DNA of 64,000 nt, taken from IMG/VR virus record IMGVR_UViG_3300020195_000009, positions 62,001 to 126,000 of that record; one strand, written 5' to 3'. This document shows positions 5,648-62,387 of the stretch, in pieces. Every line of letters starts with the position of its first letter. The stretch's first letter is position 1. Under the pieces are notes generated by a model that was not told where the DNA came from, did not search any database, and saw only the letters and a list, made by a program, of their open reading frames with translations. The position numbers and the translations under genes are program-made.

Positions 5648-8600
5648 CTACTCCACTGCTTGCAGTTTGATGAGTTGGTCCAGCACCTTTTGCTGCGACT
5701 TGATCCGCTCAGCAACAGCTCTCAATTGCTTGACGAGGATACCCTTCTCCAGGTTGATCCTAGCGTCAATCCATACCATCCGCTTGTCGTAGAGGCGATC
5801 TCCGGAGGACACGAGCTTCTCCACCGCTGCAATCCCCGTTGTATCAAGGTAGGCCCCTCTAGTCAGAACCGTAGTCTCTCGTGAAACCAAGTCCGTCAGT
5901 AAGAACCCACGAGCAAAGTACGAGGGGTCTACAGTGCTAGGAGGAACCAGGACGTCAACGGCCGTGGTGAGCAACGTCTGCCAACTTAAGATCGACTGCA
6001 AGTAGGTCTGGGCCTCCTGGCGGACGGCAAACAGCTCTTTCAAGGCCTGGGCACTGACTCCGAATACTTGGACGATGCGGAAGGTGAGAGCCTGAGGGAA
6101 GCTTGGGAAGCCTGGGGAATCGCTGATCTTCAAGGTGAGAGAATCCACAACCTCCCCGACCGTGTAGATGCCCTCGTTGGTTTGACTTGGGGGGATGTAC
6201 ACGAGGTCCCCAGCAACCACTTCCGAAGTGATGAAATTGACCCCAATTCCAACAAGAGTGTCGGCTGCCGTAGCGTTGCCGCTAGCGAGAGCCGGACTCA
6301 GCCGATCCGTGAAGACAGCAGAGAAGAAGTTGTCGATGGAGTTCAACTCGCTGGTCGGGTTGGAGCTGAGGATCGCAATTTGGGAGGTCAGGCTCCCCGT
6401 TGCCCCACTGAGGTTGCTATACGTGTTGAGGTTGTTGACGACTCGGTAGGTCGCTGGGGTAGTTGTATCGGAGAAGGCCGCTGTCAGGGTGAGTTGGGTA
6501 GCCGAATCAACGGAGGCCACCTGCCTCCGTTCAAGCTTGGCGGGATGCACTGCTTGAGTCAGGACAACCGTGTGCCCTGCTTGGACGCCGTTTACAGCAA
6601 AGTTTGCAAAAAGGTCCGTAACGATAGGACCCACTATCGAAGAGAAAGTACCCGTCTGAAGATCGGTGGCTGTAGTGATGAGGAAATTGAACCCCGAGTC
6701 CGTGATCGAGAACGGTACGTCCACCGTGACCGTCGTAGGTGTCGCTACAGACACGCGACGAAACTGAGTTAGCCCGTTGAGGCCATCGAGGATGCGCACC
6801 AAGTCCCCGATTTGAGGAAGAGGCGCTACGAAAGAGGCCGTGAGAATGGTGGCCGTCCCATCCAGAGATCCAACCCCAACAAACGGAGGAGTCGTGTTGG
6901 TTGCGATCGAACCTCCCGCACCGAGGTAAGTAAGCTCAGTTGAGAGTAGGTTCGGCTTGGCTCCTGGTTCTGTGGTGGGGGCGGTCTCTCGGGTGTAATT
7001 TGGGTTGAGGAGCGGGAGCCTTTGGTCGCCGCTATCATCGAACGGCTGGCCTTGGAGAGCTGGGACCTTGAATGGAGCCACCAAGGAGTTGTTGTAGGTG
7101 ACGATGGATTGGAGCAGCTCCTCTGAGGCTGGATTTTGAACCCGCAACTCGGAGATGACAGCGGGGACAGACCCATCAAACGGAGGGTAGGGTTTGATGT
7201 ACGTTAAGAACCCATTATCGGCATCCAAACCCACGTCAAATCCGATGCGGTAGCTCTTCTGGTACGAGGTATCCGCTCCAGCAAGATGAACCGTTGACCC
7301 AAGAGGGACCGCACCAGGAAGCACGGGAGCAAGAGTCAGGGATGTTGGCCCCCCAACCGTGATTGTTGCAGGAGAGCCCTCCGTGACGATGTAAGCGCCC
7401 GCAGGATCCCGAACCACGACCTTCATCCCAGTCACAAAAGCTGGCCGTAAAGGTCCAGGCTGCGTTTCTACGGCCGCCGTCGTGTCGACTTGCAAGGTGG
7501 CCGCACCCGTTGATGCAGCGGCCGTCACACGTGCTCGTGGGACTCGACGGAAAGCTGTTGGGGATGTGCTCGTGACCTTCTTGGCGGAGAGATCGAGCAT
7601 TTGGTCCCCGGTCGCCGCACTCGTGTCACTCCCAGCAATCGTGTAACTGAAACTGGTCCTAGCCGTAGGGTAAAACCGACTCTTGGCGTTCGCTTCGTAG
7701 GCCTTGAGGTAGGTTCCAAGGTACTTGAAAGGTAGGAGCGGAGGTGTGAAGTCAATGGGGAACGGGGAGATCCGGAAGAAGTCGTCGATCTGGTTGGTCG
7801 CGAGGGAGAAGTCGCTGACAATCGAACCCGTCGTCCCGTCGAACTTGAACCTCCCGTCGTAGTCCCCCACTACCCGACCATCCATATTTTGCAGGAGGTC
7901 GTCGATGAAGTTGATGTTGTCGTTGTAGAACTTGAGGACAGCCCGAGCGACAAGGTCCTCGTTCGCCAGCCGCCCCTCAGGGAAGTAGACCGACTCCCCA
8001 CCCCTCTCGAAGAGCTTGGCGGTTCCGGCGTTTTCAAGTCGTGGCCCCCCTGAGGGTCCCGACTGCGAGTCGTCATTGTACTTCTGGGCAAGCTCACCAC
8101 GGAAGTTGGTGAGGGTCTCGACCCTGAAGTAGAACGAATCCGGGGAGTAAGTCGTGAAGCTTGCGGAGAGTCTTTGGTTCTCTATCCCGTTGGTTGCGTT
8201 AGGAGAGATCGCCGCCGTGTAGGACGCACGCAACTGACCTGAGTTGATAATCTCGTGCTTCGAGTAGAGGATTGAGAATTCCTCGCTCGGCAACAAGGAC
8301 TCAGCGAAAATAAGAGTCCCTGCATCGTCGATCGTGAAGTCCGTAGGGGTGGTGAGAATCTCACCGGGGGCACCTTCGACTTGACGGAAGACGCGGATCG
8401 CATCCTTCAACTCCGTGAAGGGCGGGAGAAGGGCGGGAGAAGCACTGGTCTTCACTGTCGTCGTTGACGACTCGAAGACCGGCCGAACGGATCGACTCAA
8501 CGTATGCGTCCCGACGGTATACTGACGTGCGGTCGATTGAGTCAGTACAATCTCCGTGCGATTCAAGTTCACATCAAATGTTGACCCGGTGACGAGATAG

Positions 8601-11600
8601 AAGTCGTTGATGACCGGAGAGCCACCCGTCACATAAAGAGCGACGCCCGCAACGTAGAGCCCCGTCTTGTCCCCAAATAGCTTGAACTTGTTCATCCCAC
8701 GCGGGATGGTGTCGAAGGGATCTGGCTCCAGCACGAAGTAGGCAGGTAGGAACGGAAGAGAGGTCAAACGGACCGGCCCTGAGGAGACGAACAGCTTGGG
8801 TTGAGAGAACCCATCCCTGAAGACCGCTGGAGCTAGGATCGTAACTGTCGTCTCGTTGGTGCCAGCATTGTACGTAGATCCGGCGAGCATGTACGCTTGC
8901 TCATCCACAATCCGAAGCAGGTGGTCCGCCGGGAAGACGGATGTTTGATCTCCTTTCGCCTTGAAACTGGACCCCCCCTCCGTGATTGTGACCTGAAGGA
9001 GGTTGATCGGGGGGAGAAGAACGGTTGTGGTGTTCTCACCCCCGATAGCGTTGAAGACGTTGTAGTCGATGTAGACCCGCTCCGAAGGTTGGACGATGGC
9101 ACCATGGGGCAGAGCGTCCGAGATCGCCATATCCCCTCCTGGTGTCGGCAGAACATCAGGTAGAAACGTAAGCGTAGAACTCGACGGGTTGATTGAAATC
9201 TGAGTCTCATCTTGAGGTCGACCCCCTCGGAATACGGCTGGGGAAGGGTTGATAGCAATCTCTCGACCCAAGGGGTTGAAGGACATCACCGATGTCGGGA
9301 TGGGGTGACTTACGACCTCTTTCCGGACCAAGAAGGTAGCTCGCTCTTCAATGATCGTAACGGGCGGATCTTCTTGAAGAGAAGTGTAGGTCAGAAATAG
9401 CTCGTCCATCGCGAGCAAACGCTCGATGGTTTGGATGAACCCAAGGCGAGGTTCGATCCTGTACTCTACCCCCTGAATGAGCTTCAAGGCTCCATAGATC
9501 GTACCGCCAGGTCCTACATCGATGGAGCTGAAATTCAGGTTCCCCGTGTCTTGGCTAACCTCTACAGCCCCTTGAACCATGAAGCCTGGAACCGTGAAGG
9601 ACCCGTCGTTGGTCACAACCGTAGGCGTAGAGAGAAACGTCAAACCCAGTCGGAAGCGAGAGCGCCCGATGAGGCCGGGGTTGATGTTGAGCCTTGGGGA
9701 ATTGGTGATCGCCCCCAACGCTCTAATTTTCTCGACTTTGGTGTTGGGGTCGACAAGAAGTGCCTCTTGGAAGAATCTGTCCGCAAGGATCTCTTTTCCT
9801 CGACGGATTTCGTAGGCGATCCCTGTATCGACGGAGGGAGCCGGCGGGTTGAAGGTGAAGGTGGAAACCCCCACGGTATCAACCATATAAACACCCTTAC
9901 TTGGCCCTGAGAGCACAAAGAGAAGGTCCCCAAGGAGGACCCCTGCCCCGGCGAAGTCCGCCCCAACCTGGCTAACGGAAGTCAACGTGAAGATGGCCGC
10001 ACCCGTCCCCTCAAGGATGAGCGCACCGTCTGTTTGGATGAACGTGACAAGCCCAGAGAGGGGCTCCAGGAGGGCGTCCAGGTTGAGCGTCAGAGGTACA
10101 AACCCAAGTCCCTGATCCAACTCCAAGATGATGTTGGGGGCATTGACCAAGGGATCCGTCAACGGGACCGCTCCAGTACTTACTGGAATGGGAATGACGA
10201 GATTGTTTCGGCGAATAGCGAAGTTGAACTGCTTTTTGTCAAAGTCGAGAGTGTAACCGAAGCCCGAGGGTGGGGTTGGACCATCGAGTCGAGGAAGAGG
10301 TCCCGTGAAGGTCCCTGTTCCTTGCTCGATGTCGAAGGTCATCGGGTAGGCCGGATCATCAATGGGGTTGACCGGCATGAAAATGAATGGCATCCCCACG
10401 ATAGGGTCGGCCCAAGATGCCCCCGTGGTGGGGAAGAACGCCGAGATGTCCTTCGCATCCGGGTCCTGAGCTGCGGGGTCGATAGGTGTTCGGAAGAACC
10501 GTAGGGAGATGCCTCGTTCGATCGGTAGGTCTCCGAAGATGACCTCGGCTGCCCGAGTACCGTAGGTAGCCACATCAGGGGCGGAGAACTGAACCGCTCC
10601 GCTTGGATCGACCTGAACCTGTCCCGACTTCCCAAGAGTGTCGAATGCAGCCACCCGAACGAAGTCGGGAAACTGAACGATGTCTTTCTCGATCTTGTAG
10701 GTTGCGCCTGTAACGGAAGGGAAAGGGGGGGCTACCGTTACCTGAGTCTCGGATGGTACGTCGGTGATCATCCTGTGGCTTCCGGCGTAAAGACCTCCGG
10801 TAAGCACCACGATATCCCCTGCTTTGACCTCATTCGTCAGGAAGGCTGCACCTCCATCGTTCATCGTGGTGGTGCTTGGAAACGTCCCCGTGCCCGTCAG
10901 GAGAGTCGGAACAGCCCTGAACACGAGATCGGCCCCGTCACTCGGGAGACCGATGATAGAGCTTGGAGCTGCCACGGTCCCAAGGGTCTGTCTAGGGAGT
11001 GTCTTGCTTCGCTCGAACAAGACCCCGTCGTAATACACGGGCTCTCCGTTGTTGTTAGTCAGGTCGGTCGCGTTGAACTTGACCCTCCCCGTGTCCCGAG
11101 CCCACTCGAACGTCCCTTGAATCGGGTTCAAAGAGAATGCAACTTCAGTGGCCACATCGATGGGCGTCAAGTAGAGCCCAAACCCAAACCGAAGGTTCGG
11201 CTTCTGGTAGTTGATACCTAACCCAAGACCAGGGATTGGGGTCAGGAGGATGGTATCTGTACCCGCGATCCCAAGCTGCCCCGAAGATTCCTTGGGAGTG
11301 AAGAACGCTTGACGCTGGAAGAAGACGTCTTGATCGTCGTAGGTTGAAAGGTCCGACACGTTCCAGTTGAGGTTGCCGGTATCAAGACTCAACTCCACCG
11401 AACCCACGGGAGGCCCGGCGAAGGCCCCGTCATTAACCACCGTAACGATAGGGAAGGTGGTCCCACTACCCGAAGACCCTACCGCAAGCCGGTAGGGAGC
11501 CACCCCCAGGGGGAAGTTAGGCTTCTGGACCTTCAGTCTCGTCGTGTTTGCATCCGGCCCGAGGGTACCTACTTCGGCACGAACCGATCCTCGCAAGGGG

Positions 11601-11866
11601 ACGAAACGCGCCTCTGCCCCATCGAAGTCGAAGCGAGCGAAGCCGTCTTCGTTCTTCGTCCACCCGAACTCAGCGTTTGCTAGGTCCCCGTCAACAAGAG
11701 CGAGGGTTAGATACTCAACACGACCTGGATTCGACTCATCTGTTCCGAAAACCGCGTTGTACGACCCAGGGTCGGAGATGAGGTTGTCAGGAGTCGACGT
11801 AAACGTGGAGTTTGCGGACCCCACACGCGGCTTCTCAATGACATACCCCTTCAAAGAAAAACCCAT
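5648..11866 (-). CDS. Very large baseplate/tail-fibre-associated structural protein
   Basis: 2072 aa, beta-rich (T/G/V/P), with several repeats of the type 'F...GV..GD.V....G...G.Y.V..V.S.T.LT'; located between spike and wedge genes. Confidence 0.7.
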   Translation of the reverse strand: MGFSLKGYVIEKPRVGSANSTFTSTPDNLISDPGSYNAVFGTDESNPGRVEYLTLALVDGDLANAEFGWTKNEDGFARFDFDGAEARFVPLRGSVRAEVGTLGPDANTTRLKVQKPNFPLGVAPYRLAVGSSGSGTTFPIVTVVNDGAFAGPPVGSVELSLDTGNLNWNVSDLSTYDDQDVFFQRQAFFTPKESSGQLGIAGTDTILLTPIPGLGLGINYQKPNLRFGFGLYLTPIDVATEVAFSLNPIQGTFEWARDTGRVKFNATDLTNNNGEPVYYDGVLFERSKTLPRQTLGTVAAPSSIIGLPSDGADLVFRAVPTLLTGTGTFPSTTTMNDGGAAFLTNEVKAGDIVVLTGGLYAGSHRMITDVPSETQVTVAPPFPSVTGATYKIEKDIVQFPDFVRVAAFDTLGKSGQVQVDPSGAVQFSAPDVATYGTRAAEVIFGDLPIERGISLRFFRTPIDPAAQDPDAKDISAFFPTTGASWADPIVGMPFIFMPVNPIDDPAYPMTFDIEQGTGTFTGPLPRLDGPTPPSGFGYTLDFDKKQFNFAIRRNNLVIPIPVSTGAVPLTDPLVNAPNIILELDQGLGFVPLTLNLDALLEPLSGLVTFIQTDGALILEGTGAAIFTLTSVSQVGADFAGAGVLLGDLLFVLSGPSKGVYMVDTVGVSTFTFNPPAPSVDTGIAYEIRRGKEILADRFFQEALLVDPNTKVEKIRALGAITNSPRLNINPGLIGRSRFRLGLTFLSTPTVVTNDGSFTVPGFMVQGAVEVSQDTGNLNFSSIDVGPGGTIYGALKLIQGVEYRIEPRLGFIQTIERLLAMDELFLTYTSLQEDPPVTIIEERATFLVRKEVVSHPIPTSVMSFNPLGREIAINPSPAVFRGGRPQDETQISINPSSSTLTFLPDVLPTPGGDMAISDALPHGAIVQPSERVYIDYNVFNAIGGENTTTVLLPPINLLQVTITEGGSSFKAKGDQTSVFPADHLLRIVDEQAYMLAGSTYNAGTNETTVTILAPAVFRDGFSQPKLFVSSGPVRLTSLPFLPAYFVLEPDPFDTIPRGMNKFKLFGDKTGLYVAGVALYVTGGSPVINDFYLVTGSTFDVNLNRTEIVLTQSTARQYTVGTHTLSRSVRPVFESSTTTVKTSASPALLPPFTELKDAIRVFRQVEGAPGEILTTPTDFTIDDAGTLIFAESLLPSEEFSILYSKHEIINSGQLRASYTAAISPNATNGIENQRLSASFTTYSPDSFYFRVETLTNFRGELAQKYNDDSQSGPSGGPRLENAGTAKLFERGGESVYFPEGRLANEDLVARAVLKFYNDNINFIDDLLQNMDGRVVGDYDGRFKFDGTTGSIVSDFSLATNQIDDFFRISPFPIDFTPPLLPFKYLGTYLKAYEANAKSRFYPTARTSFSYTIAGSDTSAATGDQMLDLSAKKVTSTSPTAFRRVPRARVTAAASTGAATLQVDTTAAVETQPGPLRPAFVTGMKVVVRDPAGAYIVTEGSPATITVGGPTSLTLAPVLPGAVPLGSTVHLAGADTSYQKSYRIGFDVGLDADNGFLTYIKPYPPFDGSVPAVISELRVQNPASEELLQSIVTYNNSLVAPFKVPALQGQPFDDSGDQRLPLLNPNYTRETAPTTEPGAKPNLLSTELTYLGAGGSIATNTTPPFVGVGSLDGTATILTASFVAPLPQIGDLVRILDGLNGLTQFRRVSVATPTTVTVDVPFSITDSGFNFLITTATDLQTGTFSSIVGPIVTDLFANFAVNGVQAGHTVVLTQAVHPAKLERRQVASVDSATQLTLTAAFSDTTTPATYRVVNNLNTYSNLSGATGSLTSQIAILSSNPTSELNSIDNFFSAVFTDRLSPALASGNATAADTLVGIGVNFITSEVVAGDLVYIPPSQTNEGIYTVGEVVDSLTLKISDSPGFPSFPQALTFRIVQVFGVSAQALKELFAVRQEAQTYLQSILSWQTLLTTAVDVLVPPSTVDPSYFARGFLLTDLVSRETTVLTRGAYLDTTGIAAVEKLVSSGDRLYDKRMVWIDARINLEKGILVKQLRAVAERIKSQQKVLDQLIKLQAVE

Positions 11867-11894
11867 GTCAGTCCTCGACTTGGCTCCACTGTTA

Positions 11895-12464
11895 TCAGAG
11901 GATCGTCCCCACGCCTACACCAGCGGCGGGGTTGGGCCCAGGAGCACCCACAATAGGACTAGGAAGTTGGAGAGCTGTGAAAACGATGTCCAGAGCGCTT
12001 CCAATGGCGGTAGCCATCTTGATCGAACCAGGGTTGGTCATCCCCTGAGTGGCAAAACCTGCGATCATTGCAGGTACCGCCGATGCGGACTTGAAGGTGC
12101 AAACGCAGGCGCCGACCCCCACAGTCGGGTGCGCCGTGACCACGGATGCCTGGAGGAACGCCAGGTTTAGACCCGTTGCCAGCCCCATAATCGTCAGAGG
12201 GGCCATCACCCCAAGGATATTTTGAGCCGCGAAACCGAAAGTTAGGGCAGGGATGAATAGCTGAAATGGGACCAAAAGAGGAACCGTCCCTACACCCGTG
12301 CCCGAGAACCCTGTATCCGCAGTAAGAACCGTGAGGGTGTGCGCCCACGTGTTGATCCCCGCTGAGACACCGGAGGCGAGCTTGATCGCACCTGGTCCGA
12401 TGTGTAGGACGCCCGCTAGCTGGATAGCGAGAATCGCTGTTGCACCTGGAATCGTAAGCGGCAT
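11895..12464 (-). CDS. Hydrophobic Gly/Ala-rich structural protein (spike-associated)
   Basis: 189 aa with internal helical repeats ('KLASGVSAGI', 'GLATGL', 'KMATAIGSAL'); would directly follow the spike gene if the HNH insertion were removed. Confidence 0.65.
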   Translation of the reverse strand: MPLTIPGATAILAIQLAGVLHIGPGAIKLASGVSAGINTWAHTLTVLTADTGFSGTGVGTVPLLVPFQLFIPALTFGFAAQNILGVMAPLTIMGLATGLNLAFLQASVVTAHPTVGVGACVCTFKSASAVPAMIAGFATQGMTNPGSIKMATAIGSALDIVFTALQLPSPIVGAPGPNPAAGVGVGTIL

Positions 12465-12467
12465 AAT

Positions 12468-12512
12468 TCAAATACTTCGGATGACAGCGCATCCCTGGAG
12501 AGGGAGACCTGT
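12468..12512 (-). pseudogene. Displaced duplicate of the spike gene 3' end (TGLPLQGCAVIRSI*), within a 39-aa mini-ORF 12468..12587
   Basis: The last 12 residues (LPLQGCAVIRSI) plus TGA are identical to the spike C-terminus ending at 13426, but with different synonymous codons. Confidence 0.85.
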
Positions 12513-12588
12513 GGAAATCGCGGCCGACATCAAGGGTACGGGGGCCACGGACACTGGGGCCATAAGATTGACAGGTGTGAGGGGCATT

Positions 12589-13407
12589 TCAGGTCGTACT
12601 TTGGGGAACTGGAGCCGCAGACTCCAAGTAGTCAGCGAGACGACGGAACGCTCCGGCATCCATACAGTTCTGCTTCATCGTGTTCGCCAGGTGACTGATG
12701 ACCGCGATATTACCTGGGACGTACCCGAGGGTCGGGTTGATGCGGTCGAGAGTCATCGAGCGTTGACCTACCTTACCTACACCTCGTTCAAAAGGTTCTT
12801 TGGTGATGGGACACTGCCCATCCAAAGGGATGATCTTCACAATGTCCTCAAGGGTGATCGTGAAAGGTAACCCGAATCGACGGGCTCTCTGACGAGCACA
12901 CTTTAGGAGCAGCTTCCCTGGGTAGTTCTGATAATACTCCCGTTCTTTGCGACGAACCTGGTCTCCGTTTTCAAGACGATACTGCCTGGCAACCTCTCTA
13001 AGTTTTTCAGCGTTATCAGCGTAATACTTGTTGTTGTACTCCTTGTACTCTTCGCGATTAGCTTCTCGGTGAGCCTGTTTAGCGATGTGAGTCTTCTCAG
13101 CATTCGCCTCATGCCAAGCCTTCTTTTGGACTCTAATCCGCTCCTTGTTGGCCTCCCGATACACCCTCAGCTGTTCCTTCTTCTCCTCTGGAGTCTGTTG
13201 AATTGCCTTCGTCCGTTGCTCGTAGGCAGTGGCTCCAAACTTGGCGATCCACCAACGTCGGAGGGTTAGCCGGACGATGCCGAAGCGTTGAGCAACTGAA
13301 GTGAAAGTTTCTCGGGTGTGGAACGCTTCGTAGGTCTCTTCAGGACGGACAGGAGAGGGGGGCATGACTCTGATTGCTAACACATCCCTTGAACGATTGC
13401 CAATCAC
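12589..13407 (-). CDS. Free-standing HNH-type homing endonuclease
   Basis: C-terminal 'CPITKEPF...SMTLDRINPTLGYVPGNIAVISHLANTMK' is the phage HNH-like nuclease pattern (LDRI....GY...N...I....N..K), preceded by charged helical 'YREANKE' repeats and an N-terminal HTH-like segment. Real start may be the ATG at 13365. Confidence 0.85.
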   Translation of the reverse strand: MIGNRSRDVLAIRVMPPSPVRPEETYEAFHTRETFTSVAQRFGIVRLTLRRWWIAKFGATAYEQRTKAIQQTPEEKKEQLRVYREANKERIRVQKKAWHEANAEKTHIAKQAHREANREEYKEYNNKYYADNAEKLREVARQYRLENGDQVRRKEREYYQNYPGKLLLKCARQRARRFGLPFTITLEDIVKIIPLDGQCPITKEPFERGVGKVGQRSMTLDRINPTLGYVPGNIAVISHLANTMKQNCMDAGAFRRLADYLESAAPVPQSTT

Positions 13408-13425
13408 ACTCTAAGTGTTTGATAT

Positions 13426-15609
13426 TCAAATACTTCTTATCACGGCGCACCCTTGCAATGGAAGAGACGTTATCCAATCCAAACTCGGCGAACCAGGGGG
13501 GTGCATCGGCAAACCACGGCAAACACCGAGGACTGCGGGGGGTCCCCCCAAGAGGACTTGAATGGACGTCAACGAGATCGCGATGGCGGCCGTGATGTTT
13601 ACTGCAAGGCCTGCTGTGATGGCAATGGCTCCAGCGGCGGCAGCCATCGAGATAGCTCCGGCTGCCGTGGTCATCGAGATGGCTCCGGCTCCTGTTGAAA
13701 TCGAGATGGCTCCGGCTCCAACCGTGATGGAGTAGGCACCCGCAGCGCAGTTCCAAGCCACGGCCCCTGCCGCAACGGTGTACGTCATCGCCCCGGCAAG
13801 AAGGGTCGTGAGATGAGCCCCGGCCAGCGTGGTGCTGATCTTACCCCCTAGTGCAATCGTCTCCATGTACTGGAGGGCAAAGGTGTTCTGAGTCTTCCCT
13901 GAGATGAAGTTGCTCAGCTCCCCAGCGGTGAGCGCATACCCGTTGAGGGCGTTGATGTTGACCTTGCTGGCTTGAAGAGAATAACCCCCTGAAACCTTCT
14001 TGGTGTAAGCACCGTTGACGGTCTGAGTGTCGTTTCCAGAGATCGTCGTCTCATCGTTGCCCGTGATGCTCGCACTGCGGGCGATGTCATCCTCATCCAT
14101 GACCCCGTGGTAGCTGTTTTGAACCGAGCTTCGGAAGTGGGTCTTGATCGCCTGACCTGTTGAACTCGATCCGCAATCTAGGAAGATGCCGCCTTCACAT
14201 GTCAGGTGGATGGATAGTTTGTCGGGAGTGGCCGCTCCGATGCGAGCCTTGAGGCCGCCCTCCAGGTTGATCTCAGCCGAGACGTTCTTCGTAGGGTAGT
14301 TCTCGACGCTAGAACCTGGGATGTTGACGAAGAGCTTACCCTGCTTGCTTACGGCTACCGCAAATTTGCTCTTTGACGCACTCCTGGGGGGGTTCATCTG
14401 GAAGAGGTAAGCCGCAGCCATGTTGAGGGCCTCATCCACGCCAACACTAGGGGGACGAGCGGCCTCGTCCATTCGGAACCCGCTTGGGTTCCCTATCTGA
14501 TCGAAGTCCTCGAAGAGAACCGGCTTGAGGATACGCCCGTACTGACGTTGACCAAGGGTTGAGAAGGAGTCGTTACCGATGACCGTCCCAAAGACCTGCT
14601 CGATGTAAACCTTGGGGCGGTCCATCGAGAAGCCGTCGATCTCCTCCAGTACCTCTTGACGGAGATCCGTATCGTGCCGGATCTCCAAACGGCGTTCCGT
14701 GAAAGCACGTCCCGAACCACCCGTGAGGGCATCCTCAAAGTTGGTGGCTGCATTACCAGAGGGATAGTAGACCTGTCTTCCGTTGGAGTACGTGAGAGGT
14801 GGGAACTCCTCGTTGTCGTTGATGCGATCGAGGACCTTGCCGGTCTCTGTGTTCAAGTACGTGTTGGGTGGGATCCCTGCGTCAGCAAGCTCATCCCGTC
14901 CAAAGTAGCGTTGCTCGACCGTTCGGACAGTTTTACCGAAGGTCCCGTCCTTTTCCTTTTGGAAGATGTCGAGCGGAAGATTCATCTCCCCTCGTCGGGC
15001 GGCCCCAGAAAACAAGTAGCAGGCCGAGTCGGACTCGACTCGATGAATCGCTTGGGAGATCAGCGTCCGATCAACCGCTCGAAGCTCAATGAGGTCTCCT
15101 GCTTGGTTGCAAAACTTGACGTCGGAGGAGAGGTGCATCTCCGATCCAGACGAACTCATCCCCATGATGTCGCCGGGACGACCCATCATCCGCTTGAATC
15201 GGATGGTCTTCCCGTAGAGTTTGTCGATATCCGCTGACTCCTCGGCCGTAACCGCACCTGGGTCTACGGGAGAATGAGGATCAAACCGAAGCCCAAGCTT
15301 GTTCCCAGTGGGGATGTAGCCGACGATCACAGCATCGTAGAGCTGCTTTTGACGGCGTCGGTATGCGACGATGACAAGAGAATTGACCTCCGGGATCCCG
15401 CCCAAGAAGCTGCGGGGACCGCACATGGCTTGGGTGAGGTCTACCTCGAACCGCTCCTCCGATCCGGTGACCATCCGAAGATCCGCCTTCATGTTGATCT
15501 CATCCACTCGCGTGATGAGGGCGATCTTTGTACCGGAGAACGGAGCATTATCCCCGCTGATGAACTCCTTTCCTGGGATCTTACCGACGGGTTGCTTAGG
15601 GAAGCCCAT
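13426..15609 (-). CDS. Baseplate central spike (gp5/gpV/VgrG-like)
   Basis: N-terminal OB-fold-like segment ('GGIPEVNSLVIVAY'), C-terminal beta-helix repeats ('GNDETTISGNDTQTVNG', 9-aa 'GAISISTGA' repeats); follows the hub gene. Confidence 0.8.
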   Translation of the reverse strand: MGFPKQPVGKIPGKEFISGDNAPFSGTKIALITRVDEINMKADLRMVTGSEERFEVDLTQAMCGPRSFLGGIPEVNSLVIVAYRRRQKQLYDAVIVGYIPTGNKLGLRFDPHSPVDPGAVTAEESADIDKLYGKTIRFKRMMGRPGDIMGMSSSGSEMHLSSDVKFCNQAGDLIELRAVDRTLISQAIHRVESDSACYLFSGAARRGEMNLPLDIFQKEKDGTFGKTVRTVEQRYFGRDELADAGIPPNTYLNTETGKVLDRINDNEEFPPLTYSNGRQVYYPSGNAATNFEDALTGGSGRAFTERRLEIRHDTDLRQEVLEEIDGFSMDRPKVYIEQVFGTVIGNDSFSTLGQRQYGRILKPVLFEDFDQIGNPSGFRMDEAARPPSVGVDEALNMAAAYLFQMNPPRSASKSKFAVAVSKQGKLFVNIPGSSVENYPTKNVSAEINLEGGLKARIGAATPDKLSIHLTCEGGIFLDCGSSSTGQAIKTHFRSSVQNSYHGVMDEDDIARSASITGNDETTISGNDTQTVNGAYTKKVSGGYSLQASKVNINALNGYALTAGELSNFISGKTQNTFALQYMETIALGGKISTTLAGAHLTTLLAGAMTYTVAAGAVAWNCAAGAYSITVGAGAISISTGAGAISMTTAAGAISMAAAAGAIAITAGLAVNITAAIAISLTSIQVLLGGPPAVLGVCRGLPMHPPGSPSLDWITSLPLQGCAVIRSI

Positions 15610-15611
15610 GG

Positions 15612-18600
15612 TTAACCTAACTGCGCCATCTCTGCCTGCTTATGGGCGAGGTCTTGTTGCGCTTGAGCGATCTGTTTCCTAAGGCTTTCCGCCGAGTCGG
15701 TGTTTCCGATGGTGGTGTTACCCGGCGTGTTGCTGGAGCTGCCAAAGGTGGAGCGGCCCTTCAAAAGAAGGGTGTTCTCCCTCTCAACAGCGGTGAGACG
15801 CTTGTTGAGTCGATCAATTAGACCCGCGAGGTTGGTGATCTCCTGTGCCAACCCGGCCTTCTTCGCGTTCTTCTTTATGTTATCGCCGAAACTGGAAAAG
15901 GCTTTTTTGAGATCCGACGCGGCCGAGCTTCCCTGTTGAGCTGTTGCAATCGGGTCCCCAAGGCCCGAACGGTTCATCGATCCGTACGGAGGGGCAAAGT
16001 CAGATTGGCCGGAGTCTCCCTCTCGACCCGTAAAGAGGTCCGGTAGAGGTTTTTGGAGACCCGAATCCTGACCTGTCGCATCCCCACGCAACGACTTCTC
16101 GTACGGTTGGTGGACATCATCGAGCGTCTTGTAGAGGTTCCAAAGGAACTCATCCACCCTGTCCTTGATGTTCGCGAACTTGAGGGCTGGATCTTGGGGT
16201 TTGTTGAAGTTTGGAGTCTCCCCTGTCTCCCCGTGGACGTCTTGGCCGAACAGCTCACTCGTGTCCGGACTTGCCGCACTGATGATGTTGCGAAACTGAT
16301 ACCCCACATTGATAAAGGCTAGGTCTGCTCTCCCGATCTGACAGTCGCAGTCGGGATCTCCAGGGGCATCCGCAGACCGGATGGACATCTCCGTAAGAGT
16401 CAACGCTCTTGAGAACTGGCTCGCTTCCACACTGGCTGCATTACCCTTGTAACCAGGGGAACCCAAAGGAACTACGTCGATGAACTTCTCTTCCGTAGCC
16501 GAGAATTGAGCCGGCCTGTCCCCGACAGTACCGCCAGGGGTCAAGACCGCCGCTGTTTGATAATCCTCTGGGAGCATCCTCGCTAGAGCATCTGCGGGGT
16601 TAGCGTAAGCTGAGGTGATGGAGGTCAGACCTTGCGACTGAGCGTTGAGCATCGCGAACAGGTTGCCACTCAACGCCGTTTGAAGGTCGACCCCCTCCCC
16701 ACCCTTCAACCTCTTGTTCGCCTTACCTGGCTCACCCTCGTTGAGAACAAGAGAGCCGTCACGAAGGGCAACCCCACGACCATACCGGAAGTGGCCGACC
16801 ACCTCGAACCCCCTTGCATCAGACACGGGGCGAACCATCGCATTACCGTTAGGGATCGGGCTTTTTTCTATGCCCGTGGCGGTGATGTTTGAACTTGGAA
16901 TGAGGGCGAACTGAGTGATGTCCCCTGACACATCGTGGGCGTACACATAGACGCCAGCTGAGTTGATCCCGTATTGGTAACGGTTCTCACTGTGCTTCTT
17001 CTGGTGAGCGACGAGCTTCTCATCTGCTCTTGCAAGGCCCTCCTTTACTTTAGCCTCCTGTTGAGTCTTGTTGACCTTAGGCGCTTCCTTCACCTTGACG
17101 AATTTGTTAGTCCCTGGCTCCTTCTGTCCGTCGTTGGCCTTATCAAACGTAGCTTGGTCCATAGGGCGGGCGTAGACCATCACGACGTTAGGGTACCCAA
17201 CGATCTTACCGTTCTTAGGGTGCCTTAGGATGAGCGGCTCGTAAGGCTCTGTAGTCTTCCTATCCTCTGGGTTCACATTGATTGGAGGAACGGTTGCGGC
17301 ATCCCCCATTTCAAGAGTGAACGCCTTTTGTGCAAGCCCTTTGATAGTGGGGGGACCCGGATTGACGTTATCCTTCTTCGCAGGTGGGGGTTTCGGTGGG
17401 GACCCTTTGGCCTTCCCTGAGGCTGCGAGTTTGTCAAACTTAGCCTTCGCAACTTGAAAGGCCCTATCAGACAAATCGCCGGTCGTCTTGAGGGTAGCCA
17501 TCCCTTTGATGCCAATGAACTTCTGGCGTCGGGCCGTCAAAGACAAGGTGGTTGTCGCTCGACCCCCAAAGGAGATGTTGTGGCTGATTCCTTTCAAGTA
17601 CCAAACTTGGTCCTTGGGGGCAACATAGACTGGGAACCCGAGACGTAATTCAGGGCGCAACGGGATATTGATGGTTGCTTGGTGTCGCCTGGAATTCAAG
17701 CGGTCCATGATGTCCATCCCGTGGTAGTACATCATCGTTGGATCCGACATCCACTCGCTGTTGTACGAATGGGGACGCCACCCGTACTTCCGAAGCAGGT
17801 GGTAATCAGTTACGGATGACGTCGGGGTCGACTCTTCCCCAAGTCCATAGTCGATGTTACCTCCGAAATTGCCTTGCATTGTCATCTGTGTGACAACCTC
17901 AGCTTCCGAATCTGAGAAGTTCCAGTCGATGATGTCGATGTCTTGGATCCAGGACACGGGCTTGTTGGCGATGATGTCCAAATTGTAGAAGGGGGGCTTG
18001 AAGACGATGTCCCCCGTAACGTCCATAAAGAACTCGAACCCAAGAGCTTCTTTACAGGTGTTGGCGATCTCTAGCTTGGTTTGGTACTCGGCCTGCCAGA
18101 AATTAACCTGACCCGCTTGACTGAACTGAGTCTTGAAAGCGGTTACACCAGGATCGGTAGGATCAAATATGAGCTGCGAGGCATTGGAGCCCCCGTTCGC
18201 ATTTCTGACCGCTGTTGAGGCGACGTGTGGGTTACTTTGGGTAAACTTACCCTTGTCATACGCTTGCGCAAGCGAGTCTCCTCGGACAGCAATCCCATTC
18301 ACCCCATAAAGAAGCAAACTGGACCTAATTCGAGAGAACCGGCTCGACCAGTACTGCATGACATCCCCCAAGACGGCAGTAAACGTCTTGGTTTGTTCGG
18401 TCTCTTTTCGTAGCGTGATGAGCGAGCCAGTCCCTAGGATCACATCACCAAACGCCATCTGCGCCAGGGTCATGATAGTGTCGTAAGGGTTCGTACCGAA
18501 GAGCACGTTACCGAAAATGCTACGACCCGATTGCCCGGCCGGGGCTGTAAATGCCGGGTTGATGTTCATCCGGCAGATTTCCCACCACTTGAGGATGTCT

Positions 18601-19010
18601 GCGCAGTTGATAGTTACCGTGTGCTCCCCAGCCGAGTAGCTGTCACTCACCTCGGTGACAATACCCCAGAAGATCGGGTAGTACTGAGGGATGCCTTCGA
18701 GGAGGTAGTACCCCTTGGCGAAAATCTCGATCTCCATCATCGGGGAGATCATGGGTACCCCGTCGAAGTAGAAGTCTTCGATTTCATGCCGAGGGACCGA
18801 CATGGTGACGTTAGCCGAGCCAGGCACGCTATCGACACTCAAGTCCACTTGAATTTGAGTGATGTATTTGGAGAAGTCGAACTTGCGCTTGCAACTAGGG
18901 CAGCCAATGACATCCTGCTCGCCGTTGAGGTAGACGATAGCATCAGGAGCCGTAACAACCGTCGGTCGGAAGTTCGGTTGAAAGGTTCCTTGAAACGGTC
19001 CACGAGCCAT
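15612..19010 (-). CDS. Baseplate hub protein (gp27/gpD-like) with C-terminal extension
   Basis: 'KLEIANTCKEALGFEFFMDVTGDIVFKPP' and 'INIPLRPELRLGFPVYV...YLKGISHNI...TTTLSLT' are typical hub motifs; located between tube initiators and spike. Confidence 0.8.
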   Translation of the reverse strand: MARGPFQGTFQPNFRPTVVTAPDAIVYLNGEQDVIGCPSCKRKFDFSKYITQIQVDLSVDSVPGSANVTMSVPRHEIEDFYFDGVPMISPMMEIEIFAKGYYLLEGIPQYYPIFWGIVTEVSDSYSAGEHTVTINCADILKWWEICRMNINPAFTAPAGQSGRSIFGNVLFGTNPYDTIMTLAQMAFGDVILGTGSLITLRKETEQTKTFTAVLGDVMQYWSSRFSRIRSSLLLYGVNGIAVRGDSLAQAYDKGKFTQSNPHVASTAVRNANGGSNASQLIFDPTDPGVTAFKTQFSQAGQVNFWQAEYQTKLEIANTCKEALGFEFFMDVTGDIVFKPPFYNLDIIANKPVSWIQDIDIIDWNFSDSEAEVVTQMTMQGNFGGNIDYGLGEESTPTSSVTDYHLLRKYGWRPHSYNSEWMSDPTMMYYHGMDIMDRLNSRRHQATINIPLRPELRLGFPVYVAPKDQVWYLKGISHNISFGGRATTTLSLTARRQKFIGIKGMATLKTTGDLSDRAFQVAKAKFDKLAASGKAKGSPPKPPPAKKDNVNPGPPTIKGLAQKAFTLEMGDAATVPPINVNPEDRKTTEPYEPLILRHPKNGKIVGYPNVVMVYARPMDQATFDKANDGQKEPGTNKFVKVKEAPKVNKTQQEAKVKEGLARADEKLVAHQKKHSENRYQYGINSAGVYVYAHDVSGDITQFALIPSSNITATGIEKSPIPNGNAMVRPVSDARGFEVVGHFRYGRGVALRDGSLVLNEGEPGKANKRLKGGEGVDLQTALSGNLFAMLNAQSQGLTSITSAYANPADALARMLPEDYQTAAVLTPGGTVGDRPAQFSATEEKFIDVVPLGSPGYKGNAASVEASQFSRALTLTEMSIRSADAPGDPDCDCQIGRADLAFINVGYQFRNIISAASPDTSELFGQDVHGETGETPNFNKPQDPALKFANIKDRVDEFLWNLYKTLDDVHQPYEKSLRGDATGQDSGLQKPLPDLFTGREGDSGQSDFAPPYGSMNRSGLGDPIATAQQGSSAASDLKKAFSSFGDNIKKNAKKAGLAQEITNLAGLIDRLNKRLTAVERENTLLLKGRSTFGSSSNTPGNTTIGNTDSAESLRKQIAQAQQDLAHKQAEMAQLG

Positions 19011-61733: not shown

Positions 61734-62387
61734 TTATCGCGGGTTGGCGAAGGTGAACGATGTCGTGAACTGAACAGCGCCTCCCGTGGATCGAACAAAC
61801 ATCGTTGAAACAAGTCCGAAAAACCCAGTGAGTTCCTTCCCAAATGGGATCAGCATCTCCGGCCCACCCGGATCGAAAGCGACGTACAGAGGGTTCGCCC
61901 CATCGAGATTGAGGATGCGAACATTCTCCATAGCTCTTGGTAGATCGAGCTGGAGAGCGTCTGCGATCCCAGTCCCGGTCGGAGCACTCGCCGTGAACCC
62001 CGATTGCAACGGCCCGGTGAACGGGGGGAGCACCAAGGTTGCCGCCCCCGGTGCCGGAGTGACCATTTCGGCGCTTGCCCCATCGATGTAAACAAGCTTG
62101 ATCCAAAACGCATCCGTATCCGACAGGGAGAAGTTGGAAGGCTTGAAAATCATCCGAACGTTCTCGCCCGGTTGAATCACATGCTGAGGGCCCGCTACCT
62201 CAGGGTCCACCTTTCCTGTTCTGGGGACGGTCATCACCGTGGTCGCGAAAAGACCCCCTGGGTTGTTGGCGACATCCGCCTTGAGCCGGTACTGTTCAAC
62301 CAGCTCCGATGCAGGTCGGATCGGAGTGATGAGATCGATCAGGCCGGGTTTGCGACGAAGGATTGAGAACAGGCGGGGGGCTGTCAT
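61734..62387 (-). CDS. Putative structural protein
   Basis: 217-aa beta-rich ORF, tightly coupled to the upstream gene. Confidence 0.65.
   Translation of the reverse strand: MTAPRLFSILRRKPGLIDLITPIRPASELVEQYRLKADVANNPGGLFATTVMTVPRTGKVDPEVAGPQHVIQPGENVRMIFKPSNFSLSDTDAFWIKLVYIDGASAEMVTPAPGAATLVLPPFTGPLQSGFTASAPTGTGIADALQLDLPRAMENVRILNLDGANPLYVAFDPGGPEMLIPFGKELTGFFGLVSTMFVRSTGGAVQFTTSFTFANPR

Follow-up and report, generated by a model that had tools for sequence, protein, structure and literature searches.

The locus described here lies in a 64,000-nucleotide (nt) stretch of viral DNA, positions 62,001 to 126,000 of the IMG/VR record IMGVR_UViG_3300020195_000009. The whole stretch is hereafter called the window (W in comparisons), and coordinates without a prefix refer to it. 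The source record is a 286-kb viral metagenome contig, 60% complete by CheckV. Every gene in this part of the window is on the minus strand. A spike gene is followed by a putative free-standing homing endonuclease gene (HEG), then by a second copy of the 3' end of the spike gene, and finally by a gene of 189 amino acids (aa), the 189 gene. This report concerns how such an arrangement, with one spike end on either side of a HEG, may have arisen. The features are as follows; the allele labelled 189' is a foreign version of the 189 gene, while L105 and X2 are sources of a HEG-less sibling.

13426..15609, minus strand: spike gene, 727 aa, a tail or baseplate central spike with a gp5-like C-terminal beta-helix, in use (open reading frame (ORF) and PHROG 694)
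13437..13471, minus strand: substitution patch, spike codons -15 to -3, a putative co-conversion tract (mismatches to L105)
13426..13470, minus strand: copy A, the final 14 codons and stop of the spike, in use (the spike C-terminus reads ..DWITSLPLQGCAVIRSI and stop)
13366..13425, minus strand: leader of the HEG cassette, 60 nt (motif ATTCGTTCAA ... AGAGTC ahead of ATG, kept in relatives with a HEG, HEG+)
12589..13365, minus strand: HEG, a 258-aa free-standing ORF of the homing endonuclease type, ATG at 13365 (PHROG matches and structure model)
12559..12587, minus strand: stub, about the ten first codons (MPLTPVNL..) of the foreign 189' allele (likeness to 189' of contig L100)
12513..12558, minus strand: 46 nt separating the stub from copy B, matching neither spike 3' regions nor 189-family 5' regions significantly
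12468..12512, minus strand: copy B (TGLPLQGCAVIRSI and stop), remnant of a dead spike 3' end that runs from codon -14 to the stop and continues the reading frame of the stub
12480..13437, minus strand: segment of 958 bp missing from the HEG-less sibling allele (X2 join and L105 alignment)
11895..12464, minus strand: 189-aa Gly/Ala-rich gene, which normally abuts the spike stop; a strongly allelic cassette

From the HEG stop to copy B there are 76 nt; after copy B come ATT, the ATG of the 189 gene and, beyond that gene, a gene of 2072 aa. In the Logan assembly of the probable source run the 1.9-kb stretch was contained within one 19.9-kb contig with 0 differences and a depth of 95. This assembly was built from the same reads, and backs the join without being an independent sample. 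A blastn search of GenBank phages with the 3.9-kb region gave no match. The spike protein matched PHROG 694, "baseplate hub and tail lysozyme", over residues 467-675 (E=4.9e-10), and its homologues (n=259, about 725 aa each) were mostly from contigs up to 660 kb.

Copies A and B encode the same 12 residues and differ at 10 nt in 9 codons, with the HEG between them, as the initial annotation had pointed out. All ten differences are synonymous. Overall, 32 of 45 nt are identical, and an exact 13-mer is common to both copies (13436-13424 in A, 12478-12466 in B). When 10 substitutions were placed at random in a simulation, an all-synonymous outcome occurred in 0 of 200,000 placements, and therefore the copies diverged inside working genes and not by drift after a duplication. 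Judging from the sequences, A and B are two long-separated alleles encoding a strongly constrained peptide, which is why their differences are all synonymous; the "recoding" between them reflects alleles that diverged under purifying selection. Summed log codon fractions were -21.0 for A and -16.3 for B, i.e., the copy in use consists of rare codons and the downstream copy of codons typical for the genome, which agrees with the initial annotation. The last 22 codons of the spike scored -1.68, while the 1st percentile of 22-codon windows in long ORFs of the genome was -1.50, and their G+C content at third codon positions (GC3) was 0.43 vs 0.68 across the whole spike gene. Low GC3 at the spike end was considered as a sign of foreign origin and rejected, since the shift is general (mean -0.06 to -0.10) and is as strong as that of the window in the more distant HEG-less relative L013 (-0.26 relative to the gene body).

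Pfam and NCBIfam searches returned nothing for the HEG product, the spike or the 189-aa protein. A phmmer search of the HEG product against PDB gave coiled-coil noise only, with no sequence match for the nuclease part, and a single-protein scan of viral contigs gave no match; homologues came only from the large protein search. Residues ~114-251 matched PHROG 3322 (endonuclease, 3e-28), PHROG 1035 (endonuclease VII, 1.2e-14) and PHROG 3118 (HNH, 1.2e-11). The architecture derived from an alignment of 36 homologues comprised an N-terminal helix-turn-helix (HTH), a long helical linker and a C-terminal HNH-like beta-beta-alpha module. The HEG profile matched the HTH protein 2jn6 (transposase-like, E=0.002); one homologue carries PF13384 and PF13518, and some relatives have 2-3 tandem HTH copies. 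Invariant residues among the 36 homologues were C185, P186, S203, D207, G214, Y215, N219, A227, N228 and K231, and N219, H225, N228 and K231 are conserved across them. The AlphaFold2 model (predicted local distance difference test, pLDDT, 92.7) has strands at 204-208 and 220-224, followed by a helix at 225-232. All top Foldseek matches of this model in PDB were HNH nucleases (PacI, Gme HNH, Cas9 HNH and McrA), with weak E-values of 0.06-1. Residue conservation makes nuclease activity of the 258-aa protein plausible. Within 11800-13800 no Rfam match was obtained at E<=1, and no group I intron ribozyme was found. An intron- or intein-borne HEG is not supported, as the gene has its own leader, start and stop and lies outside the spike frame.

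A HEG-less allele of the same locus was found in L105, a contig from another sample. Its identity to the window is 95.8% in the final 764 nt of the spike and 97.3% in the 5.6 kb that follow (6.3 kb in all), and it aligns on both flanks of the insert with a 38-nt overlap. In run X2, from a different study, a contig joins 12479 to 13438, skipping 958 nt. Mismatches in X2 were listed individually except within ~30 nt of the ends of the aligned pieces. Those listed sit at L105 positions, and L105 has the same numbers of mismatches in total (21 and 14); X2 thus carries the same allele, and the possibility that X2 is a HEG-less allele with the codons of copy A was ruled out. Both read ..CGA AGT ATT TGA ATT ATG across the junction of spike and 189 gene. 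Neither the empty-site junction nor the left HEG junction was found when viral contigs were scanned for the exact patterns (0 matches). The spike end of the sibling represents a third haplotype, A', identical to A at 36 of 45 nt and to B at 32 of 45. The initial annotation had predicted that HEG-less relatives should carry the codons of B, and this failed for the nearest sibling; only the distant L013, which has the spike end nearest to B, favours it (36/45 to B vs 31/45 to A).

The differences between the window and L105 are unevenly distributed. Ten substitutions, almost purely synonymous, fall within 13471-13437, i.e., codons -15 to -3 (10 of 45 nt at the spike end vs 3.2% upstream, binomial p=1.3e-6). 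No difference was observed in the next 56 nt upstream of this patch, the next one being at 13528. Such a dense patch beside the HEG is what co-conversion with the HEG predicts. The homology of copy B begins at codon -14/-15, which is the left edge of the patch in A, and a single break whose ends were little processed would give such a shared edge. From 12479 onward the window is sibling-like. The HEG-less sibling of one sample was split in two contigs, L001 ending at the window equivalent of 14169 and L105 starting at 14187; the split is inside the repetitive GAGAIS beta-helix region of the spike and seems to have arisen in assembly, at an internal repeat.

The stub begins with an ATG 1 nt after the HEG stop and reads MPLTPVNL, the first eight residues of the 189' gene of L100 (L100:1803-2372). 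Stub and L100 189' start are identical at 23 of 29 nt, a score above all 200 shuffles. The cassette consequently carries donor flank on both sides. Stub, 46 nt and copy B form one 39-codon ORF, 12587..12468, which ends 3 nt ahead of the ATG of the 189 gene, and this mini-ORF may keep the 189 gene translationally coupled. A longer remnant of the spike end upstream of B was not established, as the 46 nt were only non-significantly collinear with the PGxPSLD-coding region.

For comparison, ~45 distinct spike-end loci from related megaphage contigs were used. The same endonuclease family occupies the junction between spike and 189 gene in W, L003, L012, L015, L016-18, L019/20, L021/22, L024, L032, L034 and L036; at least 11 related contigs have it there, and none of these has a second spike end. 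Most of the HEG+ loci have a conserved leader of ~57 nt ahead of the HEG and a HEG stop that overlaps the ATG of the next gene. The leader motif was compared across 9 HEG+ loci and a HEG remnant in L100. In ~30 distinct relatives without a HEG the 189 ATG lies -1 to +10 nt from the spike stop; in the sibling the junction reads precisely TGA ATT ATG. Because copy B stands before the 189 gene with the same spacing, it is supported as a dead remnant of a spike terminus in a junction of the HEG-less, native type. The junction is a hot spot for HEGs with gain, decay and loss, and the duplication in the window is the exception. The clean HEG+ junctions of relatives, the 189' stub fused to B and the sibling with a third haplotype were all beyond what the initial annotation had described.

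Several other variants of this junction were recorded. Two genes of this endonuclease family are in tandem in L036:2522-4292, the first with a triplicated N-terminal HTH module. Longer members with two tandem nuclease domains were found in L024:5181-6377 (also P0131-P0133, P0137 and P0140), some with an additional CxxC-type segment. An unrelated two-domain classical HNH ORF with CxxCH motifs (L057:4202-4810) and a ~2-kb insert with several reverse-strand ORFs (L049:5137-7093) occupy the same position. Decayed HEGs were seen in L025, where the last ~20 codons (..LFRRIADYLERAQEPVLKKAG and stop) are left in an 87-nt spacer after the spike stop, and in L100:1627-1802, where the leader is fused to the last ~45 codons. 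The 46-nt spacer between spike and 189 gene in L013 (L013:8233-8278) loosely resembles the HEG leader, and HEG and 189 gene both begin with ATGCC. It may be a site from which a HEG was lost by deletion between the two starts, which could not be demonstrated. Codons linked to HEG status among 45 distinct spike ends are mostly in the last five, e.g., G at the third base of Arg in 0/13 HEG+ vs 20/32 HEG-less ends; this signature was not corrected for relatedness and was not used as evidence.

The genes at this locus do not share one history. The closest HEG+ relative is L012, with nucleotide identities to W of ~90% in the spike body, ~87% in the 2072-aa gene, ~72% in the HEG and ~49% in the 189 gene. 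The corresponding synonymous divergence (dS) was 0.47 for the spike body, 0.60 for the 2072-aa gene, 1.71 for the HEG and 2.27 for the last 23 spike codons. HEG identity was 73% for both W-L012 and W-L015, while the spikes are 94% and 65% identical, respectively; this disagreement implies a non-vertical history of the HEG. The 189 gene of the window is 97.5% identical to that of L105 and 89.5% to that of L013, and ~49% to those of L012, L100, L101, L102 and L104. At the protein level, W and L012 (L012:2126-2695) are 41% identical in the 189-aa protein and 94% in the spike, while W and L013 (L013:8279-8848) are 93% identical in the former and ~75% in the latter, with flanks at ~70% nucleotide identity. 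Family and function searches with the 189-aa protein (window 11895-12464) gave nothing. From these identities the 189 gene appears to behave as an exchangeable allele cassette. Another short mosaic patch was seen at the spike end when L012:1232-1260 was compared with L013:8164-8192; codons -23 to -15 are nearly identical although the spike bodies are only ~70% identical, and the next six codons (SLPLQG) all differ synonymously.

The assignment of the inserted gene to a free-standing homing endonuclease type, made in the initial annotation, is supported by its predicted HTH and HNH-like domains, by sporadic presence and absence at one locus, and by a history incongruent with that of its neighbours.

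We tentatively favour, at a little under an even chance, the view that a single homing event went wrong at the HEG hot spot between spike and 189 gene and left this structure as its scar. In a mixed infection, a HEG-less genome would have been cut by the enzyme close to codon -15 of the spike (around TGG AT^N ACN). The spike of the cut genome would have ended in B codons and directly abutted a 189 gene of the window type. Its left end would have invaded the spike of a HEG+ donor, and copied the last ~15 donor codons (copy A), then leader and HEG, and finally the opening codons of 189'. Capture of the second end would then have failed, as the 189 alleles are ~50% identical and the next good homology is 600 nt away. 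With alleles too diverged for this capture, the new strand would have been linked to the right-hand side of the break by an illegitimate join. Codons -14 to stop of the recipient (copy B) would in this way have survived, fused in frame to the 189' stub upstream of an intact 189 gene. On this view the stub is the mark of a second-end capture that failed, not of designed cargo. Outside the sibling, B and the adjoining 189 gene have the same nearest lineage, the HEG-less L013 (36/45 and 89.5%, respectively). A single break fits with the native-type junction of B, its genome-typical codons and L013 as the joint nearest outgroup. The other HEG+ loci, where capture would have succeeded, fit as well, since they have no duplication but a swapped 189 allele. 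The claim that the downstream copy is the original terminus of this genome is plausible but unproven.

Several observations weigh against the aberrant homing event. Firstly, no HEG-less genome with B codons was present among the loci compared, and the close HEG-less allele is nearer to A. Secondly, no donor was found in which a full 189' goes with this HEG variant and the A end, and the closest HEG is 74% identical. The 46 nt between stub and B gave no match to 5' regions of the 189 family, and in the comparison with spike 3' regions 24 of 200 shuffles reached the score. The layout of the locus, the allele without the insert, the patch and the stub are observed directly, while the position of the cut and the roles of donor and recipient are what we infer, the cut site from sequence boundaries only. 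The divergence between W and L012 begins at codon -23, i.e., tract edges are not always at codon -15. Finally, at the position of the canonical HNH general-base histidine the 36 homologues have a nearly invariant R208 after the invariant D207, which leaves nuclease activity not assured.

A related proposal, in which we have slightly less confidence than in the homing event itself, is that the last ~15 spike codons lie between the cut site of the HEG and its insertion point and would be co-converted at each homing. They would be a hitch-hiking mini-cassette, with synonymous sites saturated among phages otherwise ~97% identical (A, A' and B on one backbone). If so, the failed event in the window is a natural footprint by which the cut of an uncharacterised arginine-variant HNH-like endonuclease family of megaphages maps no more than a few bases from codon -15.

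Of the other explanations, the one that survives best, although we consider it unlikely, is that the scar arose earlier in another host lineage. The whole unit of A end, leader, HEG, 189' stub and left part of B would then have homed in the ordinary way into a sibling genome of A' type, using the spike as left arm and CGA AGT ATT TGA ATT ATG with the 189 gene as right arm, and B would never have been the terminus of this genome. In comparison with the sibling, the A patch is foreign (76% identical to A'), and so are the left-hand 33 nt of B (61%). The flanking DNA keeps 96-97% identity as far as 13472 on one side and from 12479 on the other. This history fits the boundaries equally well. It requires one event more than the aberrant homing event, however. 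No second genome with the stub-B arrangement was present among the ~45 distinct loci, and scanning the viral collection for exact patterns of the junctions gave nothing.

Somewhat less probable again is a history in which A is native and B imported. A HEG-less genome of A type would have been broken near the junction, and both ends would have primed on a diverged HEG+ donor via the 13-mer, copied outward and been joined end to end. This is equal to single-crossover integration of a circularised donor fragment, with the insert as a circular permutation of spike end, HEG and 189' start. The exact 13-mer is indeed at the 3' ends of A and B, and joining the ends of the 958-bp insert restores a canonical spike end, leader, HEG and 189' start. 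Moreover, the hallmarks of A (TCN serine, CAA and GTG) are common to the HEG-less sibling, L012 and L100, and fit the vertical state of the subclade. Two microhomology-primed invasions are required, however, and the 10 differences between A and the sibling clustered beside the HEG are left unexplained. The genome-typical codons are in B and not in A, and it is B that has its nearest outgroup, L013, in common with the 189 gene.

We find it improbable that the HEG inserts inside the essential spike gene together with a 3' end recoded on purpose, destroying the target and preventing excision, i.e., that the element invades by carrying a replacement gene end, as the initial annotation proposed. 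The anatomy is the same as that of mobile endonuclease ORFs in fungal mitochondria (PMC3630166), and the A end is both HEG-linked and atypical in its codons. Against this, insertion is intergenic and without duplication in the HEG+ relatives, at least 11 in number, and the 189' stub represents donor flank on both sides instead of a tailored end. The empty site of the closest sibling fails the predicted match to B, and spike-end GC3 is below that of the gene body in HEG-less relatives too.

A chimeric metagenome assembly, conceivable for a metagenome contig with HEG+ and HEG-less siblings in related samples, or a duplication in situ followed by drift, is very improbable, since the longest exact identity of A and B (13 nt) is too short for an assembler join, which would delete and not duplicate, a second assembler yields the same 19.9-kb contig at depth 95, and drift could not produce 10 of 10 synonymous differences.

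Free-standing HEGs of phage T4, SegF, SegG and MobE, carry out intronless homing with co-conversion of flanking markers (PMC2988022; PMC2790892), and nuclease genes have been found at boundaries of genetic exchange (PMC10448857). The locus resembles SegF, SegG and MobE in having a nuclease ORF between conserved genes, presence and absence at one locus, sharp flank divergence and decayed copies in some relatives. In contrast to them, the family in the window is without a Pfam or NCBIfam model and has arginine in place of the general-base histidine of HNH and endonuclease VII enzymes, and the duplicated gene end with a stub of the downstream gene is not described in the cited accounts of those systems. 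In cyanophages, F-CphI belongs to homing endonucleases with the DHHRN (endonuclease VII) motif (PMC6083498). Both are free-standing phage HEGs with an endonuclease VII-like nuclease domain, here by the match to PHROG 1035. However, the D-H-H-R-N set was not evident in the window HEG, which has D-R where D-H is expected and D207, R208, N219, H225, N228 and K231 as conserved residues; solved endonuclease VII gave no detectable sequence match to it.

Fungal mitochondria offer an anatomical parallel to the duplicated end, in mobile endonuclease ORFs (mORFs) that bring a foreign C-terminal end of a gene with them (Allomyces atp6; Glomus atp6, atp9, cox2 and nad3; PMC3630166). In these, too, an endonuclease ORF is located between a diverged 3' end in use and a displaced second copy, and the differences are largely synonymous. 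The downstream copy in fungi is the end of the insert-less close relative, whereas the nearest sibling of the window without the insert has an end that equals neither copy and lies closer to the upstream one. Furthermore, the fungal enzymes are of LAGLIDADG or GIY-YIG type and duplication is the rule, while of the HEG+ loci in the phage family, at least 11 in number, only one has it, together with a 5' stub of the downstream gene. In phage T6, breaks by HEGs can create duplications joined by microhomology, with segmental amplification driven by SegB (PMC13096335). This is a precedent for the proposed event, alike in that the rearrangement depends on an endonuclease, copies sequence near the HEG a second time and has a junction of the microhomology type. 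The SegB case is tandem amplification of a whole unit, selected by a defence system, and here there is a single heteroallelic junction with no second HEG copy.

The locus is thus a case of ordinary free-standing HEG biology by an uncurated endonuclease family of megaphages, plus an unusual and informative failure product, and no new kind of mobile element is revealed. In uncultivated phages of 300-600 kb a selfish nuclease would shape an essential virion gene via a sharply bounded, synonymously hypervariable patch. It would also drive wholesale allele swapping of the neighbouring 189 gene, with occasional scars when homology on one side is too low, and the scar yields a cut-site prediction for an endonuclease family without a curated model. 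In annotation and phylogeny, caution is needed with the last 15 codons of the spike and with the 189 gene, as they do not share the history of their neighbours. The proteins encoded on either side, of 2072 aa (window 5648-11866) and 1132 aa (15612-19010), gave no meaningful family matches, and their synteny is conserved across the related megaphage contigs.

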